DNA of 64,000 nt from Trichosphaerium sp. ATCC 40318 (taxonomy: Eukaryota > Protista > Tubulinea), in NCBI GenBank assembly GCA_038496445.1, contig JALMLS010000531.1:62001-126000 (forward strand), written 5' to 3'. Below the pieces are notes generated by a model, which saw only the letters and a program-made list of their open reading frames with translations, was not told the origin of the DNA and did not search any database. Shown piece by piece: positions 10,661 to 47,217 of this stretch (positions within the stretch are counted from its first letter, which is position 1; each line of letters opens with the position of its first letter). A program made the translations under genes and the position numbers.

Positions 10661-11818
10661 TTAGTCATCATCACTTTGGTTTTTTTGATTTTTTTTAGTT
10701 AACCACATTCGTGTCCTTAGTAGATGTTCTTTGAATGTATTCATATCCAAGAATGAAGAAAGCTTTTCTATAGCATCTTCATCAATAACGCCATCTTCAA
10801 AATTATCTTCTTCTTCTTCAATCAGTGACATCTCTTCAGAAGAAACAAAAGTAACATCGCCTTTTGAAGTAAAAGACTTTAACTTTTGTCCACCACTTAT
10901 ACTTGACCAATGACAATATGATCTATAAGCAAACCAATATAAAGGAAAGTTCGGTATTACAGGTACAATAAAGAAAGGTAAAAAAATAGGCATACATCCG
11001 AGGTTGACGTAAAACCAGAACCAATGTTTTTTTAAACGTGCTGATACAATACTATCCAAATCTTTTAATGTTTTTTTGTTATCCCATCTTGAAGGTAGAA
11101 CTATACTAACTGATTCTGTTGTTGTAGATATATTAGATAACACAGATTCCATAGGGTCTATTTTTGCCATTTGTTCTTGTGCTTTCTTTGAAGACAGTTA
11201 GCAAAAAAGCGCAAAAAACTATGTACTGTTTTATAACTTTTTACGTTTTCGCTCTCTTTCACTCCACAGAATCAGTTATTGCAATTGCAAATACTTGCCG
11301 TGGAGTCATAAAAAACGTGAGATGATTTGAATTTAATTATTGTCACGTGACATAGGTTGCAACAAAAAAAGACTGAGACATTTTTATGTACCCTATAAGC
11401 ATAACCTATCCACGAATCTGGTTTTGCTTTGCGCATGTTTTCCCATTGCTCGGTTGCCAAATCCAAACCTTTGTATAGCAGTTTTCTAAAGCGTACCAAT
11501 GTTAGTATAGCTTTTATTTCATAGGTGAGCCGTATAATATTCGGATTTGAGCTGCGTTGGATGAAGAAACAGCGGAGAAAATTAAAATATTGTAAAAAGC
11601 AGTTTTTACGCATAGTATACGCGCCTGTAATCTAGCAGGGATAGTTTTGATACATCTAAACGTGGAGGTAATACACTTGCCGTATGTATCACCCACGATT
11701 GTTTAGGCTTTATATTTGGCTTTTTTACTATCGGAAATACTACGACGGATGTTGTGTGGTGCTTGTCGATTAACTCCAGCTTTTTAGGCGTAGAAAGTAG
11801 TCTGGTTGTAAGCCTCAT
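10661..11818 (-). CDS. Mitochondrial K+/H+ exchange-related protein (Mit_KHE1 / yeast YDL183C family)
   Basis: Presequence-like MRLTTRLLS; signature HWFWFY...PFFIVPVIPNFPLYWFAYRSYCHW. Confidence 0.75.
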
Positions 11819-23761: not shown

Positions 23762-25456
23762 CTAGTAGGACATTTCTTCTTCATCAAAATTGTCATTAGT
23801 ATTCAAGATTTTCCAGTTAACCTCTTTGAGATTTGGATGAGCCATAGAGATCGTATCAACCCACTTTCCATCAATAACTTGCATCCAATTTCTCACTACT
23901 TCAATAGTATTCACATAAGCTCCATTAAGACATAGCAAGAAATCCTCATTGTCTCCCTGACCGTATCCTGGTGTCCCGTGACTCAAAACCTTTACGGTTT
24001 TCAAAGCGTTCTTACTAATAGACATAGTTGGCATGTAAAGATTACCTTCTAAATTGAGTGCGTAGACTCCTGTAAGATCGTCCAAGTCCGTTGGCAACAA
24101 GCCCTCATTTCCACCTATGTTGAGTGTATGAACACCTTGTAGTGCCTTGAGACCTTCTCCAGATATTCTTCTCGATCCACAATGACTTGAGGCTCCCATA
24201 CAGCTTATATCAATAGAGTGAACACCCGCCAAATGTTTTAATCCATCATTGGTAATCTCCATTTGACTATAGCGCAGTGAGATGGTGTGTACACCTGCTA
24301 GTGATTTTAATCCGTCATTAGTGATATTTTGGCAGTTTGGTAGGTATATTGTATGAACGCCAGATAGATATTCGAGACCTTCGTCTGTGATGAACTCATT
24401 ATTGTCAAGGTGTATTTCATGTACACCTTTAAGTGCTCTCAAACTTGCATCGGTAACATGATAGCAATCTGACAAGTCAATGGTATGAACTCCAGCAAGA
24501 GCCTTCACACCGTCATCTGTGATGTCCACATTTTCTTTGAGATATATTGTGTGGACTCCTTTGAGTGCTTTTAAACTGTCATTAGTAATACCATAGCAAT
24601 CTGACAAATCAATAGTATGAACGCCAGCAAGTACTTTCACACCATCATCTGTGATAGAGTCATTTCCTTTGAGGTGTATTTCATGGACACCTTTAAGTGC
24701 TTTCAAGCTCGCATCAGTAATACCATAGCAATTTGATAAATCAATAGTATGAACTCCAGCAAGAGCTTTCACACCATCATCTGTGATACAATCATTTCCT
24801 TCAAGGTGTATTTCATGGACACCTTTAAGTGCTTTCAGGCTTGCATCCGTAACACGCTCACAATGTGATAAATCGATTGTATGAACTCCTGCAAGGGCAC
24901 TAACAGCTTCATCTGAGATAAAGCTTACATATCTTAACTTTATAGAATGAATACCAGCAAGGTGCAAAGCGAGTTCTGTAGTACATATGGCAAGATCTGA
25001 AACATTTAACGAATGCAAATTCTTCAGTGCCAATATCTCGTATTCTTCAATCCAATCAATACCAGGTGAAAGATCAATATGTCTTACATTAGAAAGGCCC
25101 TCTAAAATAGAAGAATATTGAAGTAAAAAGTACTTGTTACCTACACGTATACAAGGGCTGTCAGGCTTTTTTTTACAATATGGTCGATCAACAACTACGA
25201 GGGTATTGCGTTGTATACCCTTGCTTTCTGAGATCATCTTTATGTTATCAGTGTTGGCATAGATTTTGTTGTAGCCAATGTTGTCATGTAGCAGGTGAAA
25301 GAACTTAACGCAAGTTGCTGAGATGGCACATCTATCTTTGTCTTCACTCAAGAGTGATAATGAGAGATTCCATATTTCAGGAGGAATATCGCCATGAGAT
25401 GGTTTGCAATATGGTATATTAGATAAACGGCGTTTGTTGGAAGTGTTGAGTTTCAT
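23762..25456 (-). CDS. Intronless F-box/LRR protein with alternating 22-aa repeats
   Basis: F-box-like DIPPEIWNLSLSLL...ISATC; repeats GVHTIDLSxCxxxTDxSLKALK and GVHEIHLxxNxxITDDGVKALA give a 132-nt DNA periodicity. Confidence 0.85.
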   Translation of the reverse strand: MKLNTSNKRRLSNIPYCKPSHGDIPPEIWNLSLSLLSEDKDRCAISATCVKFFHLLHDNIGYNKIYANTDNIKMISESKGIQRNTLVVVDRPYCKKKPDSPCIRVGNKYFLLQYSSILEGLSNVRHIDLSPGIDWIEEYEILALKNLHSLNVSDLAICTTELALHLAGIHSIKLRYVSFISDEAVSALAGVHTIDLSHCERVTDASLKALKGVHEIHLEGNDCITDDGVKALAGVHTIDLSNCYGITDASLKALKGVHEIHLKGNDSITDDGVKVLAGVHTIDLSDCYGITNDSLKALKGVHTIYLKENVDITDDGVKALAGVHTIDLSDCYHVTDASLRALKGVHEIHLDNNEFITDEGLEYLSGVHTIYLPNCQNITNDGLKSLAGVHTISLRYSQMEITNDGLKHLAGVHSIDISCMGASSHCGSRRISGEGLKALQGVHTLNIGGNEGLLPTDLDDLTGVYALNLEGNLYMPTMSISKNALKTVKVLSHGTPGYGQGDNEDFLLCLNGAYVNTIEVVRNWMQVIDGKWVDTISMAHPNLKEVNWKILNTNDNFDEEEMSY

Positions 25457-25978
25457 GTCGAGGTGTTGATGGTTGAGGGGTGGTAAAATAATGATAAATT
25501 TGATTGACACAGATTGAAATTTAACAGCAATAAATCAATCAAGATGGTTTGAACACTCAGAAATCTGTCAAAAAGGTACTCAATCAGCCCTCATGTTATG
25601 TTAATATGGAATTTGCTACCTCAACATAGGTTTGTACTTTATTACAATATCAATCAAACAAAGTGATAACTATATTTATAACTATCGATGTGTCTCAAAA
25701 TCAGGTCACTTCTTCAGTTTTTCTGCCGACCAAAAAGTTGACGCTGAGAGTTCGGTAGCAATGCTTGAAGCACTGCAAGGTTTCAAGAATTAGCTTAGCA
25801 ATCACATTTTATGTATTTTGGAGCGATTTGAAGAAGCTGATTAATAGAAGTTCTTTTTTTTCTTGACAATTCACAGCCACCACAAGCGCGTTTAAGTTCA
25901 ATATTTCTACGCCTTCAAGAAGATTTACAGCTATTGGATACAATTCACCAGTCTTTATCGAATATTTATTTAAGTCTT

Positions 25979-28262
25979 TCATTTGTCAAGTAAGTTTGGG
26001 TACATCGATACAAGATGCTTTGCTGATGGCGTATCCTTTTTAGCTTTAAAAAACTTACGAAGTGTTTTAGGGTCTTGAGATATGAACCATGAATTGAGGA
26101 GGGTAATACTCATAGAGTTACATGTTAGTAATCCGTATTCAAGCCACTCATTCATCGTTTCAATGCTAAGATCATCAGCTGGTCGAATAAACACATCAAA
26201 GACAACAAGAGACTGCAAAGAGTCAACACAATACTTATCAGCAAACTTGAAGACGTTGAATAGAGTATCCAAATCAAGGTTAGGAGGTATGCAATCAAGG
26301 TAAGCGTATTGAACAAAAATCTTGACAATTAAGGGATCTTCTGTAACAGTGATACTTGAGTTCTTGTCACTATCATCTCCATTTGATCCAATTTCTTTTG
26401 ATAGAATAGCACCTTCAAAGAATGAAGACCTACACATCAGCATGGCCTAGAATAAATATCAGTTAATAGTCTACATATTGAGGCATTGCAGAATGGTTAA
26501 AACTCACCTTGTGACATTTAATGATGTCTTTTCCAACAATGATACTAAAATCTTTTTCTTTTGATTCAAAAAGCGTTTTGAGGGAATCACCAAGAGTCTC
26601 GGTATCATTTACACATTCTAGAGGACCTTTATCACGTATAGAGCATATGATAACGTTGTCCATGTTGATTTTCGCGTATTGTTCTTGGCTTAACTTTTTT
26701 AGGTCTGCTATCAGTCTTGACGATTTTTTCGGGAACATGAAAGGACGGATTGATGTCGCTGTGAGGCATTAGAAAAAACTGATATTTTTGTGTTTGTAAA
26801 AGTATGTTATACGCACGTGGCATTTCATTTGTTTTTGAGGCGATTTTTTCTTCGTTACTCGGTACGTGTCTCAAGAGGTGCGGAATAACTAGTGGGTTTT
26901 CTTCCGTCAAATCAACCAGCAGAACATGAATAACGCCTTTTGGTATATCCAATCCTGAGCACATGACGTTAACCATATGCATGGCACAATCATATGTAGT
27001 CATGTTTCCTAATTTCAGAGTGTGAGTTGAAGCTATTAACTTGGAGTACTACCTTGATAGTCTGGAAAGAACTGTTTGAATTTCTCTGGACGATGTTGTA
27101 TTTCTTGCTCGAAAAGATCAAGTTTTGTCATTACAAGGACAATAGGAGAACTAGCTAAGTATGCAGTTTGCGCAAGTTCTTTGAATAAGTCGCATGTTTC
27201 CTTAAAGTCACATGTCATATCATCTTCAAAGAGGTTATACAAGTATCTAGTACGAATCAAGGAATATAGTAAGAAAAAGAAGAGTTTTTTTTTAAAGAGC
27301 AAACACCTCATTGAGGGAAAGGATACCCAACGAGGGAGGTACAATAAAATGTACTATTAACATTGTCAAAGCAATGTATCCATTTTTTTCTTTCATTGCG
27401 TGCGCCTATTAACAGGTCAACAAAGATGAAGATTACAACAAAACAAACACTTACCTCCAACATCAATCAGTGAATATAGGTTACCGTTCAGTTCATAGCT
27501 TACCTCTATAATACCAGTAGTACGTATACGTATATTAACAAGCTCTTTATCGCTCACAACATAAGAATCAGCCGATTGAGAGCAAATAGATTCCATCATA
27601 CTGTAAAAAACAATACATTAAAAATACACAAAAGAAGATGGTTTACGCTTACGCTTTTGCATTACCACGGAGACACATCCTCATAGATTTAGAGTCAATA
27701 GATTCCATCATACTCATAAAAGCTTGACTGTCTTTCAACCTAGTAGCGCACGTGTCAAAAAGAAAAAAATTAAAAGAAAGAAATGTACAATGTCAAAGTG
27801 TCAATGTGCGGTTGTGTCCAAGAGTTGCCAGGAATAGCAAGAAACGAGTTGATATTGTCTTTTGTTCCCTATTTTAGTATTAGGATGTTTCTAATGACGT
27901 TTAGATAGTTTACGCTGTCTAATGTCGAATACTCGGGTAGTTGTGCTAATTCAACAAAGTACTGCTTTAGAAACGATAATCCAGGCGTTTTGTATGAATT
28001 ACGATCATCTTTAGTCATATTCGGTTGGCGAAATCGCATTAAAAGCGTTGATTTTCCTATTCTTCTATAAGACATATAAAACATATCTAAATACGCCAAC
28101 ATTACCACTCATACATGTGCCTACGATATAATTAGTGTTTGAACAAAAAGTATCAGTTAACTTACCCAAAATCTGTACTTTTGTCCGCGTGTTGCGTTCG
28201 ATCGTTTGTTGTTTTACTAAATCATCAATTGACGACCTGCGTTTCGTTGACTTGTTACCCAT
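25979..28262 (-). CDS. G-protein alpha subunit-BTB/POZ fusion protein, 11 exons, about 583 aa
   Basis: Exons 28262-28166, 28120-28106, 28056-27914, 27868-27789, 27739-27653, 27600-27455, 27405-27327, 27246-27053, 27008-26817, 26758-26508 and 26446-25979 sum to 1752 nt in one open frame. G-alpha motifs: MGNKST, GTCMSGKST, RIRTTGI, DVGGARNERKKWIHCF, TKLD. BTB motifs: DFSIIVGKDIIKCHKAMLMCRSSFF, FVQYAY, ADKYCVDSL. Confidence 0.8.
27247..27326 (-). other. U12-type (minor) GT-AG intron in the G-alpha-BTB gene
   Basis: Donor GTATCCTTT; branch site TTCCTTGAT followed by 9 nt ending in AG; splicing restores SLVGYLYNLFEDD. Confidence 0.85.
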
Positions 28263-29055
28263 ACTACTAAAAAGTCTTTTTACATTTGGGTCAGCTTAAA
28301 ATATTGCTTGTTAAGTTGTAGGTAGCTGAATCGTATGACAGGTGTCATGCAGGACTGCTTGTTTGTTTTTAATACACTGTGAATATTTCAGTTCTACCAT
28401 CATACGTAGTGTTTAAGGGTAAAGCATAAAGGTAAGTTTATCCTTTGGGTGCCATTGCGGTATAAGTTACTATCACCTTTAAAGGGGGAAGAATGCACGC
28501 TAAGTTCTGTCACAATAGTACATGGTTGCTATTGTTACAAAAGAGGGAAGATGTCGCAAGTAAACAGCCGTTTGGTAACAATAATTAGGTCAAATAGCCT
28601 TCATTGATTAGGATCTATGCCTGTTTGCGTTTAAATTACTGTTAACAGAAAGGTAATTTTCTAAAACTTGCTACTGAAAAGTACGCTGCCAATGGTCTAC
28701 AATCAGAAAATAAGAGGATGTGCATAGGACGTGCATAGTATGCCCCTTAAACTATCTTCTATTTTTTGTTCAAAAGACCAAAAAGACTCAAGTCATTCTT
28801 GTCCCATCTTACTTTCTCCTTTTTTTCGTGCTGAAAAACTTTCATTGAACTTTCGTGTTTTACTGTGAGGTGGCACCTCTTACTGCTCGTTTTTTGGCAA
28901 GCATAAAACAGATGTTTTAACATTGGAAACTGTTCAGTGACGTAGTAAACCAAGTCATGAATCCATTACCTTTTCAGAGACAGATTTTTCCTCAGCTTAA
29001 CTCCCTTGGCTTAGCGACTGTTGATAATCGAAATAATTACTATAAATTAGCAGCA

Positions 29056-31913: not shown

Positions 31914-32703
31914 ATGTCAGCAACAGAAGTTAAAGTAGTCGTAGTCGGAGACGGAGCTGTAGGGAAAACGTAAGATCTAAAGTAGTAGCAAACAGACACT
32001 TTTTCTCACTTCTTTTTGTAGGGCTATGCTACTTACATACGCAAAAGGAAAGTTCCCTAAAGGATATACGCCTACAGTATTGTAAGTACTTCACTTTTAC
32101 TAGTTCCTTTTGAACACGTGTTACCAAGAGATAACTTACGTTTAATTTAGTGATAACTACGCATGCACTTTAAACACATCGACAGGAAAGCAAATCAATT
32201 TGACGATTTGGGATACAGCAGGGTACGATTTCTTCAAGTGCAAAAACAAAAAAAAAAATGTTACATTGCCTAGAATCACTCGTTTTGTTTTAATGATGTA
32301 TGCTCTAACAGTGTTGTTTAGGCAAGAAGAATATGATAGAATTAGACCACTTTCATATGCTAGTGCTGGGATTTTCATCGTTTGCTATTCTTGTGCAAAT
32401 GAGAATTCATTGTCAAATGTTAAAACAAAATGGATTCCAGAAATTTCACATTATGCACCTGGTGTTCCTTTTATCGTAGTAGGAACAAAGTCTGACTTGA
32501 AACAGATTATGCCTGATGGAGGAGTATCTATACAAGAAGCTCAATCTATTGCAAAAGAGCAAGGTGCAGTAAAACACATGGAATGTTCAGCAAAAACTGA
32601 CTATAGCAGTGTAAAAGATATTTTTGATAGCACAGTTCAAAGCGTTTTACATCCTGCAAAGAAAAAAAAGAGCAAGAAATATAAAAAGTGTAGTATCTTG
32701 TAA
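31914..32703 (+). CDS. Rho/Rac family small GTPase, 4 exons
   Basis: GDGAVGKT, YTPTVFDNY, WDTAGQEEYDRIRPLSY, TKSD, ECSAK, polybasic tail and CAAX box (CSIL). Confidence 0.97.
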
Positions 32704-45859: not shown

Positions 45860-47217
45860 ATGGATTCTTTGAGTGTTTCGATAGAACAAGTGCTGACGTA
45901 TTATCGCAATAACCATTCAGATGTTTTCAATACACTTACAACGAATAACAACGAGACATTAATAAAACAGCTTGAGAAGGTTCTAAAAGCATCAAATACT
46001 AGTTTAGCACAACAATTGGATCAAGTTCTCTTTAAACACGCAGATAGTGACATAAACATAAAGAACCAGCATACAAGGCATTCTGAGGGCGTAATTTTAC
46101 CCAAACATAAGCAAACAAAGAAGTACGTCTGAGTAACTACAGAACATACCTCAAGTTCCACTTGTACTTACTTATTAAACTCAGAAAAACTAATAAGGTG
46201 GTGGCACAGAAAGAAGTTAATTTTCTTGACTTTCCACCAGAGATTATTTCAAGCATTATTTCGTATGTACAAGATAGATTCAGTACTGCTCAAACATGTT
46301 GTTTGCTGGCTGATATCATTCATGATGTTGTTGGATATCAACATGCTTATTTACACAATGTTCAAGATATATTAAAGATACGACAGTACAAGGGCATTAT
46401 GAACAACACCGAAATTATATTATGTGGTATGGAACAAAACACATTATATTCAATGTTGTTTGGGTGTTGTAAGATCTCAGCACATCGTAGTAAAATCAAT
46501 GATAGTGATCTTAAAGCACTCAAAGGAGTACATACCATTGACCTTGGTAGTTGTAGAAAAGTGACTGATGAGGGTATCAAACAACTTGCTGGAGTTTATA
46601 ACATTGACCTTGGTTTCACTACAGTTGAAGATGAAGGAATAAAAGCACTTGCAGGTGTTCATACCATTAACCTTTCTTTTACTTCTGTGACAGACAAAGG
46701 TATCAAAGCATTGAAGGGCGCACACACTATTGGGCTCTATTATTGCAAACAAATAACAGATGAAGGCATATCAGCACTTGCAGGTGTATCTGACATTGAA
46801 CTTGGATACACCAATGTCACAGCCAAGGGTCTCAAAACTCTCAAAGAGGCAAATGTAATTGGCCTTGAGGGTTGTGAACATATTACAGATGAAGGAATTA
46901 TAGCACTTAAAAATGTTCATTCTATCAACCTGAATGATACTTTAGTAACAGATGCAGGTCTTAAATATCTCACAAATGTCCATACGATCAGTCTTTGTGG
47001 CTGTCTCAAACTAACAGATGAGGGAATCAAAACACTAAACGGTGTTCATAAAATTGATCTTACAGACACTTCAGTATCAGATGAAGGTATCAAAGCACTT
47101 AAAAATGTGCATACTATTTCCCTTTGTGACTGTCACAATATAACAGACGAGGGTGTTAAAGCACTTACAGGTGTACATATACTTGATATTAGTGGTACTT
47201 CAATATCAAAGAAGTGA
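45860..47217 (+). CDS. F-box/LRR protein, paralogue of 23762-25456; one 5' intron
   Basis: FLDFPPEIISSIISYV F-box; about 11 repeats of GVHTIxLxx(C)xx(I/V)TDEGIKAL. Confidence 0.85.

Follow-up and report, generated by a model that had tools for sequence, protein, structure and literature searches.

The 64,000-nucleotide (nt) stretch of the protist Trichosphaerium sp. ATCC 40318 considered here (contig JALMLS010000531.1, positions 62,001 to 126,000; referred to as the window, to which all coordinates below belong) carries on its minus strand a gene of 11 exons, at 28262-25979, in which a heterotrimeric G-protein alpha subunit (G-alpha) is continued through a linker into a probable BTB domain. 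Rebuilt from the sequence alone, the exons form a single 1752-nt frame of 583 codons followed by a TGA stop (25981-25979), and the ten introns, all of the GT..AG type and 44-80 nt long, leave no internal stop in the joined frame. The fusion is created by the removal of intron 9 (26816-26759, minus strand, 58 nt; ends CCAC/gtgcgt ... cacag/CGAC), which joins ...NEMP-P-TSIRPF... in frame; when this intron is kept, the G-alpha frame reaches a stop at 26634-26632, within exon 10 on the BTB side. An earlier note, made from the letters of this DNA, had predicted both the 11-exon frame of 1752 nt and a 58-nt intron joining the two parts in frame, and both were recovered on reconstruction, with the predicted intron ends present and the protein continuous across them.

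Transcript evidence and gene structure

The splice across 26817/26758, for which the same note had proposed an RNA check, is found in public cDNA. Spliced contigs from three public runs (X1, X2 and X3), belonging to three studies, were placed on 25900-28400, and these short assembled contigs, as distinct from single long molecules, together support all ten introns. Contig 13 of X3 (1077 nt, no mismatch) is spliced at eight of the model introns, including 26758/26817 and 26445/26507, along the path 27868-27787, 27737-27653, 27600-27454, 27404-27327, 27246-27052, 27007-26817, 26758-26507 and 26445 onwards; it provides 191 matching bases on each side of the 26758/26817 junction, and its loose end at 27868 continues into exon 3. 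Contigs 3 and 4 of X1 agree, ending at 26758 and 26817 with loose ends of 12 and 17 nt (GTGGCATTTCAT and AGGACGGATTGATGTCG) that are the far side of intron 9. The depth of the bin 26740-26823 (4.03 in X3, 2.82 in X1) is that expected from its 26 exon bases alone, and therefore no contig of X3 or X1 retains intron 9, inside which the depth is zero.

The ends of the transcript are likewise visible. Contig 14 of X3 stops at 28283 and goes on in 21 loose letters, the reverse complement of which (GGTATCAACGCAGAGTACGGG) is taken to be the SMART template-switch adaptor; the material is therefore cDNA, and the 5′ end of the mRNA lies at about 28283, some 21 nt before the MGNKST ATG. This gives a 5′ untranslated region (UTR) at 28263-28283 (minus strand), with 28262 as the first ATG of the transcript. 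The 3′ UTR (25946-25978) contains AATAAA at 25970-25965, just past which, at 25946-25960, the cDNA contigs end.

With the transcript in hand, the possibility that the two halves are mainly separate proteins can be weighed, with G-alpha running to the stop at 26632, the BTB part starting from Met352, and the spliced form being a minor read-through or an assembly chimera. An ATG does stand early in exon 10 (Met352, 26738), and the contigs are short assemblies; against this, the junction is a canonical GT..AG one, seen in two runs from two studies with 191 unique bases per side, the intron depth is zero in both runs, the halves lie 58 nt apart, and the G-alpha frame, if left unspliced, would extend into the coding sequence of the BTB part, all of which makes separate proteins extremely improbable. 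The outcome that the earlier note had set against its own proposal, namely an absence of splicing, with G-alpha stopping at 26632 and BTB transcribed on its own, is not what the cDNA displays. Taken together, it can be stated with great confidence that a single expressed gene gives one mRNA whose one frame encodes a fusion protein of 583 residues, composed of G-alpha, a linker and a BTB-like region.

The 5′ half of the gene is finely divided. Exon 1 (28166-28262, minus strand as for all exons) encodes the MGNKST start (Gly2 and Thr6, followed by KRR) and the N-terminal helix, and ends after the first base of the codon for Gly33; X2 and X3 contigs span its surroundings from 28165 to 28283. Exon 2 (28106-28120) is a 15-nt microexon that encodes T-C-M-S and completes the P-loop as G-TCMS-GKST. 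Its expression is documented twice: contig 11 of X2 joins 28228-28165, the microexon letters ACTCATACATGTG and 28057-27913, and an X3 loose end at 28165 carries the same letters (ACTCATACATGTG). Direct joins of exon 1 to exon 3 were considered and rejected, as they introduce a stop or shorten the P-loop by one residue, and the cDNA carries the microexon. Exon 3 (27914-28056), spanned by X2 contig 11 from 27913 to 28057, supplies the GKST of the P-loop and the beginning of an insert of helical-domain size, which is continued by exon 4 (27789-27868; X3 contig 13 and the X2 joint 27867/27913) and followed by exon 5 (27653-27739; X3 contig 13).

Exon 5 measures 87 nt, a multiple of three, so that its skipping would preserve the frame; the only cDNA contig covering it includes it. 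An 18-nt sequence (AGTATGATGGAATCTATT) occurs exactly in exon 5 and again at the acceptor and start of exon 6 (27583-27600), giving the peptide MMESI twice. This looks like a partial exon duplication, with exon 5 as a possible cassette exon.

Related transcripts are also present in the RNA data. One 165-nt contig of X1 (contig 2) is about 90% similar to the BTB part (26388-26437 and 26508-26539) and is spliced within a few bases of the position of the intron between exons 10 and 11, with nine unmatched letters at the joint; it is probably an expressed paralogue with the same gene structure. Run X2 also contains several contigs of greater depth (word depth 10-28) whose match, at 90-95% identity, is confined to the switch II stretch 27358-27397, beyond which they diverge; judged by this, they are transcripts of other G-alphas, from paralogues or from other organisms in the sample. 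Within the window, no second copy of the fusion gene was found by tblastn of the model.

The surroundings of the gene can be described briefly. The hexamer CACGTG occurs 49 times in the window, where 10.3 copies would be expected (standard deviation 3.4), a count reached by 0 of 100 shuffles; one copy (26814-26819) lies across the donor at which exon 9 meets the fusion intron (CAC/GTG), and another lies in intron 4 (27749-27754). Two long single-exon open reading frames (ORFs), at 23762-25510 (minus strand) and 46162-47217 (plus strand), consist of repeats of about 25 residues with the pattern GVHTIDLS.C..ITD..LKALK and match Pfam LRR_6 with 61.9 and 66.5 bits; one of them lies directly downstream of the fusion gene on the same strand. 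Two exon-sized ORFs, at 32200-32703 (plus strand) and 10664-11170 (minus strand), match one the Ras family (89.4 bits, over the C-terminal two thirds of the domain) and the other Mit_KHE1 (83 bits), and are, as far as these matches go, parts of ordinary neighbouring genes.

The G-alpha module

Pfam, PDB and Atlas searches were run exon by exon, and the joined protein was tested with a BTB profile and hhalign. Exons 6 (27455-27600), 7 (27327-27405) and 8 (27053-27246) match the Pfam family PF00503 with 28.6, 31.8 and 48.7 bits at the consecutive profile positions 151-280, scores that sum roughly to 109 bits as compared with a cut-off of 48.8 bits, and solved G-alphas in the PDB match the same three exons. 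Residues 1 to about 330 are confirmed, at the level of sequence, as a G-protein alpha subunit that is degenerate but clearly homologous.

The nucleotide-binding motifs have been retained to different degrees. The P-loop GTCMSGKST (residues 33-41) is intact and conforms to GxxxxGK[ST], with Cys35 at the position of Ras G12. Switch I, RIRTTGI (residues 165-171, 27530-27510, in exon 6), keeps its Arg and Thr and aligns with R-x-[KR]-TTGI of the solved G-alphas. Switch II begins with DVGG at the end of exon 6 and continues through exon 7 (ARNERKKWIHCF), reading DVGG-A-RNERKKWIHCF, in which the Asp and Gly are kept and the catalytic Gln is replaced by Ala191 (27403-27401). In the PDB alignments the second residue of the exon 7 piece, Arg192, pairs with Arg205 of G-alpha-i1, and Ala191 therefore occupies the position of the catalytic Gln204 of that protein. 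Exon 8, which covers alpha3 to alphaG, has TKLD (27128-27117) in place of the NKxD box, lvmTKLDlfe being aligned in the PDB match with lflNKiDlfe. Nothing corresponding to TCAT (the G5 box) is found, LVDL standing at that position.

The C-terminal end of the module has changed most. Exon 9 (26817-27008), which occupies the position of alpha4-beta6-alpha5, is spliced to both exon 8 and exon 10 in X3 contig 13 and ends at the donor CCAC/gtgcgt, has no G-alpha similarity in Pfam, PDB or Atlas, and beta6 and alpha5 are unrecognisable. Switch II, by comparison, is identical to that of G-alpha-o at 16 of 23 positions, as counted from the printed alignment, and the disparity with exon 9 suggests that the switch II surface has been kept selectively. 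Between Lys39 and Arg165 lie 126 residues, a size like that of a helical domain (about 132 residues in G-alpha-i1); exon 3, the one of its exons that was searched, had no Pfam or PDB similarity. At the other end of the module, MGNKST followed by KRR presumably fits the N-myristoylation consensus with a basic patch.

The earlier note had described this part of the protein as keeping a myristoylation-type MGNKST start and all switch regions. The start is indeed present, at the first ATG of the cDNA-supported transcript. The second statement stands for switch I and for the backbone of switch II; it does not extend to the catalytic Gln, which is Ala, or to the G5 box and alpha5, which are unrecognisable.

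These replacements bear on what the module can do. The G-alpha mutants Q204L and G42V do not hydrolyse guanosine triphosphate (GTP). Because the Gln204 position here is Ala and the Ras G12 position is Cys, little or no GTP hydrolysis is expected of the module, and its binding of guanine nucleotides may perhaps be weak. The Gln-to-Ala change together with the loss of TCAT marks it, on present comparisons, as a GTPase that is slow or dead, and not as a working switch. Usual receptor coupling appears unlikely as well, because the alpha5 C-terminus is neither free nor recognisable.

The BTB-like domain

Exon 10 (26508-26758; X3 contig 13 and X1 contig 3) encodes a linker some 55 residues long, followed by the N-terminal portion of the BTB-like region (...DFSIIVGKDIIKCHK). 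Exon 11 (25979-26446; contigs X1-1 and X3-12) completes the core, which ends near residue 515 (26186), and adds a helical extension at the C-terminus and then the stop. In a full HMMER pass of exon 11 over 1.84 billion representative proteins, only two marginal matches were obtained. In the better of the two, the matched stretch lies within the clear Pfam BTB domain of a fungal protein (P0001); the second is an unrelated bacterial surface protein. The family of P0001 comprises 11 proteins besides the query, 10 of them with PF00651; the closest relatives by sequence are fungal BTB-only proteins that are uncharacterised. A profile built from 11 proteins of this family gave 26.8 bits on residues 425-510 of the spliced protein (from 26519), the best of 2000 composition-matched shuffles reaching 10.8 bits, and hhalign of the family with the spliced protein returned a probability of 94% (E 1.5e-7). 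Both methods found a single BTB-like region in the spliced protein.

Language-model features point in the same direction, since in the Atlas exon 11 falls with BTB clusters at 0.94 and the ten best named clusters are all BTB, some with BACK_BPM_SPOP. An AlphaFold2 (AF2) model of exon 11 made with the fungal BTB alignment had a predicted local distance difference test score (pLDDT) of 70.4, rising to 85-91 over residues 40-100 of the exon; the model covers exon 11, the BTB strands B1 and B2 being encoded by exon 10. When this model was compared with the PDB by Foldseek, all 50 of the 50 matches listed were BTB proteins, with SPOP first, followed by gigaxonin, KLHL11, KBTBD2/4, NPR1 and KEAP1, and nearly all of those listed are Cullin-3 (Cul3) adaptors; the SPOP rows have TMq values of 0.42-0.53 and 18-22% identity. 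In the VIA search, which is independent of Foldseek, SPOP (Z 7.8 over 136 residues), NPR1 (7.4), the vaccinia A55 BTB-BACK protein (7.2) and KLHL3 (6.2) span the whole model. The hallmarks of the fold are met in order along the protein, namely x-H-K-x-x-L, S-x-F-F, an acidic-Pro turn, F-x-x-Y-x-Y and F-x-x-A-D-K-Y, with a long A2-B3 loop (SKEIGSNGDDSDKNSS) and, in the AF2 model, helices after the core where a 3-box would lie.

Several results weigh against this assignment and against what is built on it below. Searched singly, neither exon 10 nor exon 11 matched Pfam BTB (PF00651) at E<=1, the domain being split by intron 10, and phmmer of exon 11 found no match in the PDB. The usable AF2 model was guided by the BTB alignment, and the single-sequence model was poor (pLDDT 47, unusable). 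The Foldseek E-values are weak, the best, for SPOP at rank 1, being 0.0097, and in the VIA search HEAT-like helical repeats score equally high (Z 7-9) over parts of the model, in a range that is indecisive for helical proteins. In addition, the profile family was chosen as the best match of a very large search, and the profile and the fold model both depend on the family of P0001.

From these points it could be argued that the C-terminal domain is not a BTB domain at all, and that an unrelated, lineage-specific helical domain has acquired BTB signals through chance or alignment bias. The blank Pfam and PDB sequence searches on the exon pieces, the yield of only two marginal matches (one of them the bacterial surface protein) from 1.84 billion representatives, VIA Z-scores no higher than those of HEAT-like repeats, and the reliance of the AF2 model on a BTB alignment would all be in keeping with such an origin. 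It is nevertheless very unlikely in view of a profile score far above the shuffles, the hhalign probability, the uniformly BTB composition of the ten best named Atlas clusters, the 50 of 50 listed Foldseek matches to BTB proteins spanning the whole model, and the correct order of the hallmarks. Residues from about 398 to 583 are therefore assigned, with high confidence, to a very divergent BTB domain with a SPOP-like helical extension, located after the linker. The claim of the earlier note that the C-terminus runs through a linker into a BTB/POZ domain is thus upheld by the profile (26.8 bits) and by hhalign (94%), if not in a watertight manner, the Pfam model being silent.

Proposed mechanism and relation to known systems

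In canonical G-alphas, G-beta-gamma, RGS proteins and effectors are bound by the switch II face, and a BTB domain of the SPOP/KLHL type forms dimers and recruits Cullin-3. As switch II has been kept and the BTB-like domain resembles the SPOP/KLHL type, the most economical reading of the fusion protein is that of an adaptor of a Cullin-3-RING ligase (CRL3) with G-alpha as its substrate-binding domain, to which a probability of roughly 45% is given. Briefly, the protein would be anchored at the membrane through its N-terminal myristoyl-plus-basic motif, and the G-alpha module would no longer cycle as a timer, because its hydrolysis would be crippled and its guanine recognition weakened, and would offer a fixed recognition surface instead. 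Switch II, the best conserved part, would bind the usual partners of G-alpha, whether G-beta-gamma, RGS proteins or effectors; the BTB domain would dimerise and recruit Cullin-3; and the partner held by the G-alpha module would be ubiquitinated. Such a protein would correspond, in built-in form, to KCTD5-CUL3, the ligase by which animals degrade G-beta-gamma. The earlier note had likewise read the fusion as a membrane-anchored substrate receptor that links G-protein signalling to ubiquitin ligation and is probably not receptor-coupled in the usual way; of that reading, the cDNA supports the architecture, and the function stays a proposal.

Precedents from two other lineages make an adaptor mechanism plausible. 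In animals, KCTD5/CUL3 ubiquitinates G-beta-gamma, which is a case of Cul3-BTB control of G-protein subunits (PMC10348674, PMC11047111). In function, the precedent closest to the proposed mechanism is the KCTD5/KCTD2/KCTD17-CUL3 system, in which a heterotrimeric G-protein subunit is the target of a BTB Cullin-3 adaptor (PMC10348674, PMC11047111); it differs in that KCTD5 has a pentameric BTB domain of the T1 type and its own G-beta-gamma-binding C-terminal domain, whereas here the BTB domain resembles the SPOP/KLHL type and G-alpha is the presumed recognition module. In plants, the degenerate XLG G-alphas bind G-beta-gamma and RGS in a way that does not depend on nucleotide, and they interact with U-box E3 ligases (PMC8584482). 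Like the present protein, XLG1-3 combine a G-alpha with degenerate nucleotide motifs and an extra domain; in contrast, that domain is N-terminal and Cys-rich with a nuclear localisation signal instead of a C-terminal BTB domain, the E3 ligases are separate U-box proteins, and the lineage is another. The best structural match to the exon 11 model, including the helices after the BTB core, is SPOP, a MATH-BTB-BACK adaptor of Cul3, in which the substrate-binding domain is MATH where here it is presumably G-alpha; the similarity to SPOP is structural, at the low sequence identity given above.

The step from BTB domain to ubiquitin ligase is where the proposal is most open to another interpretation, in which the BTB domain is a dimerisation or oligomerisation module only, without a ligase, and the protein forms a multivalent scaffold or sink of membrane-bound, hydrolysis-dead G-alphas. 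By holding G-beta-gamma, RGS proteins or effectors, this scaffold would buffer canonical G-protein signalling. Many BTB domains only oligomerise, and a lack of Cul3 binding is well established for many of them, such as the T1 and BTB-ZF types. In the long A2-B3 loop, no phi-x-E motif for Cul3 contact is identifiable with confidence, the domain is far from the characterised Cul3 adaptors (18-22% identity to SPOP), and its nearest relatives in sequence are the fungal BTB-only proteins mentioned above. On the other side, the best structural matches belong to the Cul3-binding SPOP/KLHL/KBTBD class and cover the post-core helices where the 3-box lies, and the Atlas neighbours include BACK_BPM_SPOP clusters, so that a scaffold without a ligase is considered somewhat unlikely. 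A further point to be set against a Cullin-3 adaptor that captures G-beta-gamma is that Ala at the Gln position may hold the module in the GTP-bound form, the state that releases G-beta-gamma in canonical G-alphas.

The nearest architectural parallel is RhoBTB of animals (RacA in Dictyostelium), in which, as here, an atypical, poorly hydrolysing GTPase at the N-terminus is followed by a linker and Cullin-3-recruiting BTB domains (PMC10413933). The differences are considerable: the GTPase here is a heterotrimeric G-alpha (PF00503) with a helical-domain-sized insert instead of a Rho protein, one BTB-like domain is present instead of two, and the N-terminus carries a myristoylation-type motif. 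By these differences the fusion is regarded as an analogue of RhoBTB and not a member of that family, the two not being homologous as fusions. The parallel does suggest a further arrangement, in which G-alpha acts as a regulatory lid over the BTB domain and gates Cullin-3 by autoinhibition, the substrates being bound by the C-terminal helical region. The GTPase domain of RhoBTB reportedly binds the first BTB domain, and a linker of the length present here (about 55 residues) would allow back-folding; RhoBTB substrates, moreover, bind the C-terminal half (PMC10413933). Since the module here is a poor switch, with the catalytic Gln gone and the G4 and G5 boxes degenerate, and one BTB domain stands in place of two, such gating is judged distinctly improbable compared with substrate recognition by G-alpha.

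A more specific form of the Cullin-3 adaptor proposal would be a lineage-specific family of myristoylated, hydrolysis-dead G-alpha-BTB receptors that capture G-beta-gamma (or RGS proteins or effectors) by switch II at the membrane for degradation, which is at present a doubtful suggestion. Relatives of exon 11 were absent from a set of 5.8 billion proteins, and the JGI metagenomes yielded neither such relatives nor the exact junction of exons 9 and 10; no encoding contig is on record for the exon 11 ORF or for the partial product expected from the cDNA. When exon 8 was searched in the Atlas, only G-alpha fragments and no cluster combining G-alpha and BTB came back, in a search that favours clusters of similar length, and the public-database searches as a whole used exon pieces, not the whole G-alpha and BTB architecture. 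Literature searches brought up no description of a G-alpha-BTB protein, in line with the earlier note, whose author knew of no characterised protein with this architecture. In a broad survey of the architectures of G-protein-coupled receptor pathways (PMC3971589), no occurrence of "BTB domain" was found, and a fusion of this kind is not mentioned in its passages on G-alpha and on architectures. What is new in the design, which is analogous to that of RhoBTB, is the pairing of two well-known domains.

G-alpha subunits are almost always free-standing proteins, in which the C-terminal helix reads receptors and the GTPase times the signal. Here, a G-alpha that appears to lack both the timer and a free C-terminus, with its partner-binding switch II kept, is fused to a domain from a class whose usual role is to recruit ubiquitin ligases. 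Should the proposed mechanism be true, heterotrimeric G-protein signalling would be coupled directly to protein degradation in a protist, and a second, independent GTPase-BTB design would stand beside RhoBTB, as a natural parallel to the control of G-beta-gamma by KCTD5-CUL3 in animals. If it is G-beta-gamma that is captured, the natural partner of G-beta-gamma would have been turned into the recognition domain of a ligase, and the role of KCTD5-CUL3 would have been invented independently.

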